Shown piece after piece: positions 8,371-21,767 of a stretch of 28,465 nt of DNA. This DNA is from Octopus sinensis (lineage: Eukaryota). The stretch covers positions 1-28,465 of the forward strand of contig NW_021833498.1 of NCBI RefSeq assembly GCF_006345805.1, given 5' to 3'. The translations under genes were made by a program, and so were the position numbers. The first letter of the stretch is position 1; every line of letters begins with the position of its first letter. Under the pieces are notes generated by a model. It did no database searches, was not told where the DNA came from, and was given only the letters and a program-made list of their open reading frames with translations.

Positions 8371-9904
8371 ACGAGTAGGGTGGTCACTCTCGCCCGGCAA
8401 TGGGCCGAGAGGAAACTGTCCCTAAAAGGTCGGGCGGAGGTGGCGAACACGTACATCGCGTCCGTCATCTACTACCGCCTGACCGTCGTGCCTTGTCCCG
8501 ACCCTACCATCACCAAACTAGAACGCATTCTCTTTCGCTTCTTGTGGAAAGGATGCGTCCCGATGGTCAGGCGATCCATTTGCTGTCAACACCCGTTAAA
8601 AGGAGGACTGGGCATGCCGTGGTTGATGATGCGCAGACACGCGCTGAGACTGCGACATCTCAGGCTCTTCGTAGACCACGGTGAACAGGTGTGGTCGCCG
8701 TTTGTGAGGCACGCTTTCCCGCAGCTCGTCTCCATGACCGGACTGCAATCGTGGATTAAAAAGAGGCCGCGGAAGGGCGAATGGCACCGCGAATGTCACG
8801 TTGCTCTCAAGCAACTCTGCCCTCCTGGGTCAACCTTTAGTGACTCCATGACAACCAAAGCATTCTATAGGGGATTAGTGGAGGGGAGGTACAACGACGA
8901 GCTCGGGGCGAACCTGGACGTCGACGAGGAATACCTGACCCGCCTGTTTGAAACGACTTTCGGGCCAGGGCCCATGGGCAACTTCCAGAGATCCCTGGCC
9001 TGGCAGTGCTACCGAGAAGCGCTACCCGTTCGGGATAAGCACTACAGACACGGCTCGAGAAACATGGGGCCGACCTGCTCGAGATGTGGTCAGAGCGACG
9101 AAACCGTTCTGCACGCACTCATGCAGTGTCCAACAATTTCCGACCTGTGGGCTTATGTCGAACAACTGCTGTCACGTGTGGGACGAGTCGGTTTATCAGC
9201 TGAGTCTATCGTCAATATTGTCACGCTTCCTTCCTTCAAACGGGAAGGAAGAGCTATTTTCATCATCCTTGTGGCTATGGCGAAAGAATGTATCTGGTGG
9301 ACACGTCTGAAAGGATTGGAGACAAACACTTTCCTCTCTGGTCAACCTCTCATCAACTTCTTCAAGTACCACTTGAAAAGGAAAGTGAGAGTAGAGAGGC
9401 AAGTTTTGTCTAGCGAACGTTTTAAAACAAGATGGGTGAATGTAGCAAGGATGGCACGCATGAATGACGAAGCCACCTTGAGCATAGTCCTATGAACCCA
9501 GAAATTGAAAACAGAGGGTTACCCACTTGCAACCAAATGTGGTAACATATAACAATATTGACCAAGGTTACTGTGGTCTTTTTGTAGGCTTTACTTCCCA
9601 CGGATAAACCTTACTTGCTTTCCCCTTTACACCATACATCATGGCACTGTGATACACGATCTCTATTGATCGTTTTTCCTCTTTCCCTTTTTTTTCCTCT
9701 TTTTTATTCTGTTTTCATTTTTCTTTTCTTTTGTTCCTTTCTCCCTTTTTCTTTTTTCTTTTCCCTTTTCCTTTTTTTCCCTTTTACGATCCCTTTTGAT
9801 CGAAAACCTACGCCACCTTTTTTTTCTTTCATCCCCCAAAAGAAAAGCTCTACCTTGTAACTTGTTCCATCTGTGTGCAGCCCTGTGTGGCCAATAAAGA
9901 AACT
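8369..9904 (+). mobile_element. Tx1-like (L1 clade) non-LTR retrotransposon, copy A, 5'-truncated
   Basis: Colinear with and highly similar to copy C from about 20257 onward; ORF2 C-terminal part, 3'UTR, AATAAA at 9893-98, then (TATC)n. Confidence 0.92.
8371..9495 (+). CDS. Partial ORF2 of copy A (post-RT region plus C-terminal Cys/His motif), uninterrupted frame, no start codon of its own
   Basis: LSLKGRAEVAN, FLWKG, HPLKGGLGMP and CSRCGQSDETVLHALMQC are typical of L1/Tx1 ORF2 C-termini. Confidence 0.85.
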   Translation, partial: TSRVVTLARQWAERKLSLKGRAEVANTYIASVIYYRLTVVPCPDPTITKLERILFRFLWKGCVPMVRRSICCQHPLKGGLGMPWLMMRRHALRLRHLRLFVDHGEQVWSPFVRHAFPQLVSMTGLQSWIKKRPRKGEWHRECHVALKQLCPPGSTFSDSMTTKAFYRGLVEGRYNDELGANLDVDEEYLTRLFETTFGPGPMGNFQRSLAWQCYREALPVRDKHYRHGSRNMGPTCSRCGQSDETVLHALMQCPTISDLWAYVEQLLSRVGRVGLSAESIVNIVTLPSFKREGRAIFIILVAMAKECIWWTRLKGLETNTFLSGQPLINFFKYHLKRKVRVERQVLSSERFKTRWVNVARMARMNDEATLSIVL

Positions 9905-10014
9905 TATCTATCTATCTATCTATCTATCTATCTATCTATCTATCTATCTATCTATCTATCTATCTATCTATCTATCTATCTATCTATCTATCTATCTATC
10001 TATCTCTCTATCTA
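9905..10014 (+). repeat. (TATC)n, about 27 units, between copies A and B
   Basis: Read directly; one TCTC variant near 10005. Confidence 0.97.
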
Positions 10015-10211
10015 CGGACGTGCTGTCACTTCGGCTCCGAAGGTAATCGTTTATTTTGACTATTTATAGCCCATATTTTGTGTACATTTTTGTAAATAAG
10101 GTGTGTAAGGCACCCAACTTTCGTTTGAGTGCTTTTCCAAGGGAGGAATTCGCCCCTAGGGGCAGTTTCAACCTCATTTCATTTCTGTGATTTTCTACTC
10201 GACATTAGAAA

Positions 10212-20900: not shown

Positions 20901-21382
20901 GAGAAGCACTACCCGTTCGGGATAAGCTCTATAGGCATGGTTAGAGAAACACGGGGCCGACCTGCCCGAGATGCGGGCAGAGCGACGAAACCGCTCTGCA
21001 CGCACTCGTGCAGTGTCCAACAATTTCCGACCTGTGGGCTTATGTCGAACGACTGCTGTCACGTGTGGGACGTGTCGGTTTATCAGCCGAGTCTATCGTT
21101 AATATCGTCACGCCTCCTTCCTTCAAACGGGAAGGAAGAGCTATTTTTATCATACTTGTGGCTATGGCGAAAGAATGTATCTGGTGGACGCGCCTGAAAG
21201 GATTAGAGACAAACACTTTCCTCTCTGGTCAATCTCTCATCAACTTCTTCAAGTATCACTTGAAGAAGAAAGTGAGAGTAGAGAGGCAAGTTTTGACTAG
21301 TGAATGTTTTAAAAAAAGATGGGTGAATGTAGCAAGGATGGCACATATGAATGACGAAGCCACCTTGACTATGATTCTATGA
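17969..21382 (+). pseudogene. ORF2 of copy C: APE, RT and C-terminal Cys/His motif, disrupted
   Basis: IGCVNARG, ISET, GDWN, YLDRI, KSPGLDG, FRPITLLNAD, KAFDRV, RQGCPLS, YADD; first 405 codons open, later indels and stops. Confidence 0.93.
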
Positions 21383-21767
21383 ACCGTAAAAATTAATACA
21401 GAGAGTTGCTTATTTGCAAAAAAAAAGAAAAAAAAAAGGAATATAACATGTGACTTCATTGACCGAGGTTACCGTGGTCTTTTCCGTAGGCTTTTCTTTC
21501 CACGGGTAAACCTCACCTGTCCTCCCCTTTACACTTCATATTGACATTTCTGTGATAACGATCCCTATTGATCAATTTTTTTTCCTTTCCCTTTCCCCGC
21601 CTCTTTTTTTTATTTTATTCTACCCCCCCTTTTTTTGTCCCCTTTCTTTCCATTTACGATCCCTTTTGATCGAAAACCAAACCCTCTTCTTTTACCCCCA
21701 AAAGAAAAGCTCTACCTTGTAATTTTGTCCTGTCTGTGTGCAGCCCTGTGTGGCTAATAAAGAAACA

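Follow-up and report, generated by a model that had tools for sequence, protein, structure and literature searches.

How does a retrotransposon whose copies run out into a microsatellite have its own RNA recognised for reverse transcription, and does a stem-loop in its 3′ untranslated region (UTR) take part? The question arises from a 28,465-nt stretch of Octopus sinensis DNA (GCF_006345805.1, NW_021833498.1 positions 1–28,465, forward strand), hereafter the window. Positions 8371–21767 of its plus strand hold three head-to-tail copies (A, B and C) of one family of long interspersed nuclear elements (LINEs), which are retrotransposons without long terminal repeats (non-LTR). An earlier examination of the letters alone (the sequence-only reading) had claimed that the 3′ UTR of each copy carries a selected stem-loop, probably bound by the protein of the second open reading frame (ORF2p). 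Comparing the copies with one another and with their relatives, we find that the stem-loop is best read as a selected, sense-strand, cis-acting RNA structure in the LINE 3′ UTR.

A 3′ UTR hairpin with pairing-preserving changes

The hairpin sequences and coordinates of the three copies (Table 1) are exactly those given in the sequence-only reading, and every base change that it listed was found. In copies A and C, stem pair 5 is U-A and pair 9 is G-C; B has G-C at pair 5 and U-A at pair 9. Pair 8 reads U-G in A and C-G in the other copies. The stem is extended by a closing pair in A (A-U, 9564/9612) and in C (G-C, 21465/21514); B has a G·A mismatch there, and the second bulge base is variable (A, C or G). 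The loops (UCUUUUUUGUAGGUUUUUCUUU) are 21–22 nt long and rich in pyrimidines, with a central GTAGG (GUAGG in the RNA).

A fourth, independent hairpin lies at positions 968–1025 of a metagenome contig (L004) whose element shares 77% protein identity with copy A. It has the same loop and keeps every pair, and its 5′ arm has gained an A opposite a U, so that an A-U pair replaces the variable bulge of A, B and C. Both transversion pairs in B are compensatory when set against A, C and L004. In the alignment of these four sequences 17 of the 22 loop columns are invariant, GUAGG included; GUAGG is the only purine cluster of the loop in three of the four, copy A having one more loop A.

Covariation was scored on the same four sequences over 13 pairs, or 52 pair cells. 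Standard pairs fill 51 of these cells (98.1%), and double-sided changes occur in 3 of the 13 pairs. As a control, sliding the 3′ partners by 1–3 columns left 33–54% of cells paired, with 0–1 double changes. Column shuffling equalled or exceeded the observed covariation score in 9 of 500 shuffles. Given the alignment unprompted, RNAalifold returned the claimed helix by itself, as the same two helices with an asymmetric internal loop between them. We also scattered the 11 differences of B from C at random over the 57 nt of the hairpin core. At least two compensated pairs with no more than one broken pair arose in 0.3% of trials (P about 0.003), and the observed number of double changes was reached in 1.2%. 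About 3.7 broken pairs were expected from this simulation and one was seen, at the terminal pair.

The hairpin also stands out by its conservation. Together with a short ATTGAC flank it forms an island: pairwise identity is 75–90% over the 57-nt core, compared with 42–57% between the stop codon and the hairpin and, between subfamilies, 26–49% in the segment next downstream; the last 300 nt of ORF2 are 77–81% identical between subfamilies. The remark that the surrounding UTR aligns poorly is borne out by this difference between core and flanks (26–57%), and the borders of the conservation island coincide with those of the stem-loop.

Wobble pairs indicate the strand. The U·G pair of A, the sole wobble of the main stem, and two more in a smaller downstream hairpin (HP3, described below), can pair on the plus (mRNA) strand only, which supports an mRNA-sense RNA. 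A minus-strand or DNA-level reading was considered and ruled out as the primary one: the wobbles fit the plus strand only, and mirrored changes would be unexpected for a protein-binding palindrome.

Selection or coincidence

Several observations weigh against a selected structure. The alignment holds four sequences, two of which (A and C) are closely related, and the robust covariation comprises two pairs on a single branch, the one leading to B. The region was chosen for its stem-like look, so the P values are post hoc. Folding of single sequences gives weak z-scores (−1.1 to −1.4); the proposed fold of A (−9.6 kcal/mol) differs from the minimum free energy structure. Within the whole UTR the stem has a predicted pair probability of 0.05 in A and 0.01 in C, compared with 0.86 in B and 0.92 in L004; in C, the U-rich loop is captured in silico by an A-rich insert upstream (21421–21440), at the expense of the proposed stem. 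The C-to-U change of A is a CpG-to-TpG transition in a dead copy and hence weak evidence, the A-U closing pair of A represents two transitions, and B and C are likewise dead copies in which part of the differences is post-insertion decay. The hairpin also lies 187–294 nt upstream of the repeat tail, whereas the well-studied hairpins of the L2 clade are immediately upstream of their repeats. Finally, a covariance model (R1) of the four hairpins finds its own inputs again (E about 1e-20) but nothing significant in sister families of 59–70% protein identity (one from Argonauta, L001, and three from metagenome contigs, L002, L003 and L005) or in the rest of the window. The main hairpin is either family-specific or evolving too fast to trace.

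The covariation statistics are modest, and strong evidence comes only from the two transversion pairs in B, joined by the indel in L004. The claim of compensatory base changes in all three copies stands in part: the pairing-preserving changes are real, but they amount to two transversion doubles in B, one transition double at the closing pair of A and one bulge-to-pair indel in L004, without three-fold independence. The broader description of a selected cis-acting RNA element fares similarly. It is supported by a stem in a non-LTR 3′ UTR, by conservation above that of the flanks and by pair-preserving changes that extend to a fourth sequence, but the sequences are few.

These same observations bear on whether the hairpin has any function. 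It might be a chance inverted repeat of the ancestral UTR, lying inside a block conserved for another reason or by recombination between subfamilies, with compensatory changes that are coincidental. The small alignment, the shuffles and simulations that reach the observed values, the weak thermodynamic scores, the disfavoured fold in A and C and the transitions in A (one at a CpG) are all compatible with such an origin. We nevertheless regard it as unlikely, given that the four transversions of B fall exactly on two pairs and restore Watson–Crick pairing in both, that the bulge is filled in L004 by a matching insertion, that the single broken pair is terminal where several were expected, and that the conservation island matches the limits of the stem-loop.

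Searches beyond the four hairpins

Other candidates for homologues were rejected. The best sister-family match to model R1, at L005 1567–1605, coincides with a stem that can be drawn by eye (GUAAUCCGGG / CCCUGAAUUAC around CUUUUUGUGGGGUUU; similar loop, CUUUUUGUGGGG), but its E value of 9.3 is not significant and, with a z-score of −0.05, it folds no better than shuffled sequence. GC-rich hairpins occur in the sister families at a similar distance from the stop codon, and RNAalifold gives them an 8-bp stem with a loop of about 20 nt; their z-scores are near 0 and homology to the main hairpin is not established.

Rfam returned no match at the gathering score, nor at E values up to 10 in the UTRs of B and C. 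Pattern searches gave only chance matches without a stem or LINE context, whether with the loop and terminal-box patterns in viral contigs, the terminal-box pattern in JGI metagenome contigs or the loop pattern in GTDB genomes. Scans guided by protein sequence yielded no relatives in metagenome or viral contigs, and the window itself has no further copy of the terminal box or of the main hairpin.

Two resemblances were noted in passing. At 27849–27950, 3.5 copies of a 29-nt unit (TAATAACTTGTCCTGGTCTTTTCCAAGTT) form a tandem repeat similar to the stem-loop junction CCTTGGTCTTTT...CCAAGG; its covariance-model match is weak (E 0.16) and probably due to chance. In an Argonauta relative with an internal deletion (L085), a different 11-bp hairpin at 9599–9641 (GUGCACCCGAA / UUCGGG-GUA-UGCAC, loop of about 18 nt, z-score −1.2) starts where the ORF2 protein match ends at the deletion. 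Its architecture is like that of the main hairpin and its sequence is unrelated.

Element identity and relatives

Pfam identifies in ORF2 an endonuclease of the apurinic/apyrimidinic (APE) type (Exo_endo_phos), a reverse transcriptase (RT; RVT_1) and a C-terminal zinc-binding domain (zf-RVT), and in ORF1 of copy B a marginal zf-CCHC knuckle (21.1 bits, cut-off 20.8). Among solved structures, the nearest to the RT is human L1 ORF2p (7.6e-30; R2, 5e-18), the nearest to the endonuclease is the L1 endonuclease, and the thumb region has L1 ORF2p as its sole match, a weak one (E 0.04). The three ORF2 domains (the C-terminal one of the Cys/His zinc-binding kind) are those of the L1 group and Tx1 clade, and insertion into a repeated (microsatellite) target, known in some Tx1 lineages, is seen at this locus. 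Membership of the Tx1 clade is plausible, as judged from domain content, solved-structure relatives and target. An assignment by the names of homologues was abandoned, the names being uninformative. L1-Tx1 families are reported to have been active of late in Octopus vulgaris (PMC13282606).

The closest proteins belong to the cephalopods Argonauta hians, Octopus bimaculoides and Acanthosepion pharaonis, and others lie on short metagenome contigs that resemble cephalopod DNA. The close LINE relatives on short metagenome-assembly contigs comprise proteins P0001–P0006 and P0008 and loci L002–L005; one of these proteins is labelled as from a metagenome-assembled genome of Herbaspirillum sp. They are probably host (cephalopod) DNA carried into metagenome bins. 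Looking up the contigs showed the hairpin in L004 and sister-family UTRs in L001, L002, L003 and L005. L085 has a (TATC)n tail, as the window copies do, L086 is a distant cuttlefish relative, and no usable UTR was present on L006, L007, L082, L083 or L084.

Array of copies in a (TATC)n microsatellite

The three copies are separated by tracts of (TATC)n (Table 1). In the final 300 nt of coding sequence, C is 92% identical to A, and B is 77–78% identical to both. Copy A retains an intact C-terminal segment of ORF2 (371 aa, 8380–9495) that carries zf-RVT, followed by its 3′ UTR (9496–9904). Copy B encodes ORF1 with its CCHC knuckle, the APE endonuclease, the RT and the C-terminal domain, with ORF2 split over several frames.

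No LINE end stands in front of the tract upstream of copy A, so this tract did not originate as another copy's tail, and insertion specifically into (TATC)n is indicated. On the simplest reading, the array arose by repeated insertion into a (TATC)n microsatellite, each newcomer entering either the tract or an older copy's tail. This targeting is seen at a single locus (three insertions, one tract).

Further repeats were noted in the window. Another tract, (TATC)32, lies at 22180–22308, about 350 bp downstream of the LINE array; a perfect 17-nt tandem repeat (ATAGATCGCTAGCCATG, 6.8 copies) occupies 1126–1240, and an interstitial telomere-like (CCCTAA)n tract 25147–25204.

Table 1 Coordinates of the LINE copies, their 3′ UTR features and the flanking repeats (window positions unless a contig is named; TRF, Tandem Repeats Finder)
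Feature	Position	Strand	Description
Copy A	8371–9904	+	LINE, 5′-truncated; directly 3′ of the (TATC)n array 8129–8370
Copy B	10016–15900	+	Full-length-looking LINE; subfamily different from A and C
Copy C	15981–21767	+	Full-length-looking LINE; subfamily as A; ORF2 split over several frames
Main hairpin, copy A	9564–9612	+	13-bp stem including A-U closing pair; two 3′-arm bulges; 21-nt loop UCUUUUUGUAGGCUUUACUUC; arms 9565–9576 / 9598–9611; conserved ATTGAC flank 9557–9562
Main hairpin, copy B	15666–15713	+	12-bp stem; 22-nt loop; arms 15666–15677 / 15700–15713
Main hairpin, copy C	21465–21514	+	13-bp stem including G-C closing pair; 22-nt loop; arms 21466–21477 / 21500–21513
HP3, copy A	9788–9801	+	GAUC-CCUUUU-GAUC; lineage-specific duplicate 9658–9671
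HP3, copy B	15774–15787	+	GAUC-CCUAUU-GGUC; one U·G wobble
HP3, copy C	21658–21671	+	Duplicate 21560–21573
HP3, other loci	L004 1109–1122; L002 1619–1632; L003 1854–1868; L001 4060–4072; L005 1621–1634		
Purine box	9838–9847; 15827–15837; 21700–21709	+	AAAAGAAAAG; conserved in alignment
3′-terminal box	9870–9904; 15867–15900; 21733–21767	+	TCTGTGTGCAGCCCTGTGTGGCCAATAAAGAAAC; conserved; small hairpin plus AATAAA
(TATC)n, target of A	8129–8370	+	242 bp, with TACC-variant units; TRF: period-4 TATC, 61.5 copies
(TATC)n, tail of A and target of B	9905–10014	+	TRF
(TATC)n, tail of B and target of C	15901–15980	+	TRF
(TATC)n, tail of C	21768–21835	+	Degenerate; TRF

Other features of the 3′ UTR

Downstream of the main hairpin lies HP3 (GAUC-CCUWUU-GRUC), single in B and L004 and double in A and C through internal duplication. 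Sister families (L001, L002, L003 and L005) have the same CCUAUU-type loop closed by other stems, CCCC/GGGG or CCUC/GAGG in place of GAUC/GAUC; stem length is 4–6 bp. Over nine sequences, 94% of cells are paired and 10 are double-changed, and none of 500 shuffles scored as high; the HP3 windows were picked by eye around the loop motif, so that this covariation is suggestive and not rigorous. Its extension across sister families makes the whole 3′ UTR look structured.

All four sequences also share the purine box AAAAGAAAA in a UTR that is otherwise pyrimidine-rich around it. As read from the sequence, the box is complementary to the 3′ half of the main hairpin loop (UUUUCUUU), and a long-range pairing between the two is possible. 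Covariation between loop and box is absent from the four sequences, and the loop change in copy A is uncompensated.

This complementarity is relevant to a second alternative, in which the hairpin is a conserved RNA structure with another role, be it in stability, nuclear export, localisation, 3′-end processing upstream of AAUAAA or the long-range pairing of UUUUCUUU with the AAAAGAAAA box. Such a role would rest on the same conservation and covariation as the selected structure itself, and the distance of the hairpin from the 3′ end (187–294 nt) and the conserved, loop-complementary box would suit it. We consider it quite improbable, as the loop and box do not covary, copy A has changed its loop without compensation, and precedents among LINEs are weaker than those for template recognition.

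At the end of the UTR, a terminal hairpin (AGCC-CUGUGU-GGCU) immediately precedes AAUAAAGAAAC. The copies end in the terminal box (...TCTGTGT..AGCCCTGTGTGGCYAATAAAGAAAC) and pass directly into (TATC)n, an ending that can be written AATAAAGAAAC(TATC)n; poly(A) is absent. The box closes with ...GGCYAATAAAGAAAC in A and C and ...GGCTACAATAAAAAG in B, and the copies thus have a repeat tail as stringent LINEs do. A terminal box of the form CCYTKGTGGCYAATAAA(A)GAAA is common to sister families (L001 ~4165–4190, L003 ~2000–2026, L085 ~9760–9790), and their tails vary: (ATT)n in L001 and L003, CA-rich in L005 and (TATC)n in L085.

A candidate handle for template recognition

Since the terminal box runs straight into the repeat, without intervening poly(A), complementary DNA synthesis must start within (UAUC)n. 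Stringent LINEs need a 3′ structure when reverse transcription starts in the repeat, which supports a role of the hairpin as a recognition handle; the conserved 3′ UTR stem-loop with compensatory changes that marks the stringent type is present here. We put at about even the chance that the stem-loop is a selected sense-strand 3′ UTR structure of an L1/Tx1-like LINE that both ends in and targets (TATC)n, most likely serving the element's retrotransposition machinery as a family-specific handle for selecting its RNA, with ORF2p as the first candidate for the reader.

The proposed mechanism is as follows. ORF2p would recognise its own RNA via the family-specific 3′ UTR hairpin; the terminal (UAUC)n of that RNA would anneal to the nicked (GATA)n strand of the microsatellite target; and the annealed end would prime target-primed reverse transcription, which is the ‘stringent’ mode of template recognition. 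Binding of ORF2p to the hairpin is suggested by analogy with stringent-type LINEs (PMC4176376, PMC1636434). Among these, a zebrafish L2 ORF2 protein binds no stem-loop but its cognate one, the stem being read generally and the loop specifically (PMC4176376), and in the hairpin of the eel element UnaL2 the internal loop is essential (PMC1636434). Folding in vivo, protein binding, the identity of the protein and a need for the hairpin in retrotransposition are what we infer for the octopus element.

The hairpin could instead serve ORF1p, as a packaging or chaperone signal in which the CCHC zinc knuckle contacts the exposed GUAGG of the U-rich loop. The packaging hairpins of retroviruses offer an analogy, as nucleocapsid knuckles bind their G-containing loops. 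ORF1 of copy B does contain a putative knuckle, and both the near-invariance of the loop and the position of GUAGG as its sole purine cluster in three of the four sequences would be expected of such a site. However, the Pfam match to the knuckle is marginal and the binding itself putative, and in the LINEs studied so far it is ORF2p that binds the 3′ stem-loop (PMC4176376). A signal for ORF1p therefore seems to us distinctly unlikely, and we return to the hairpin as a handle for template recognition, with ORF2p as its foremost candidate partner.

A wider hypothesis is tentative: cephalopod L1/Tx1-like LINEs may form sister families, in each of which a particular microsatellite as tail and target ((TATC)n or (ATT)n, and perhaps further ones) is matched by a particular fast-evolving 3′ UTR hairpin, an ‘address label’ that co-evolves with ORF2p. 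If true, the labels would keep co-resident families from mobilising one another, and the animal L1/Tx1 group would gain its first case of template recognition that is stringent and structure-based. Confirmation of the handle would provide an animal L1/Tx1-group example for the idea that stringent recognition is the common, and probably ancestral, mode among LINEs, mammalian L1 being the relaxed exception. A compact system (main hairpin, second hairpin, terminal box and microsatellite target) would then be available for studying how the protein of a LINE distinguishes its RNA from those of co-resident relatives, and a defined cis element would aid the annotation of active octopus copies and any non-autonomous passengers.

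Comparison with known systems

The closest functional parallels are the stringent LINEs of the L2 clade, UnaL2 and ZfL2-1/ZfL2-2, which likewise have a 3′ UTR hairpin and end in a short tandem repeat instead of poly(A). The octopus stem shares with theirs an internal irregularity, and its loop, like theirs, has conserved bases. In UnaL2 and ZfL2, the cognate ORF2p binds the hairpin, and hairpin and repeats are both needed (PMC4176376, PMC1636434). The octopus element differs in that its RT is nearest to L1 ORF2p, its loop is much larger (21–22 nt), its hairpin is set well apart from the repeats (187–294 nt) and does not match the UnaL2 model of Rfam, and no partner short interspersed nuclear element is known for it.

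SART1, of the R1 clade, and R2 resemble the octopus element in being specific for a repeated target, and their 3′ UTR structures are required for retrotransposition, according to studies cited in PMC3472496. Their clades differ from that of the octopus element, the R2 endonuclease is of a different type, and their RNA folds are different and larger; the octopus UTRs have no match to R2 in Rfam.

In its choice of target, the element resembles families of the Tx1 clade that insert into microsatellites, namely Kibi in (TC)n, Koshi in (TTC)n and crocodilian Tx1 in (TTCC)n/(TTTC)n (PMC4494074). These, too, are APE-type elements of the L1/Tx1 group that form head-to-tail arrays separated by the repeat. 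The octopus target and tail are (TATC)n instead, with (ATT)n in sister families, and PMC4494074 describes no 3′ UTR hairpin for Kibi, Koshi or crocodilian Tx1.

The most instructive precedent lies within the L1 clade. The sequence-only reading had set the hairpin apart from L1-clade elements, as these are usually described as recognising poly(A) rather than a 3′ structure. That view is dated: L1-clade LINEs of plants have a 3′ stem-loop with compensatory mutations, stringent recognition has been proposed as ancestral (PMC3472496), and the octopus copies themselves end in (TATC)n rather than poly(A). The implied novelty was overstated, since 3′ stem-loops are the norm for LINEs without poly(A) and had already been described inside the L1 clade, and current concepts are unchanged. 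In detail, the plant elements have a UCU loop, a CGAG 3′ flank and poly(A), in contrast to the GUAGG in a U-rich loop, the lack of a CGAG flank and the (TATC)n tail of the octopus element. The monocot L1-clade LINEs (Ohshima 2012, PMC3472496) nonetheless share with it membership of the L1 group, a hairpin supported by compensatory changes, a variable stem and conserved loop bases. The plant stem-loop has been interpreted as serving template recognition by the RT (PMC3472496), the same reading that we favour for the octopus hairpin.

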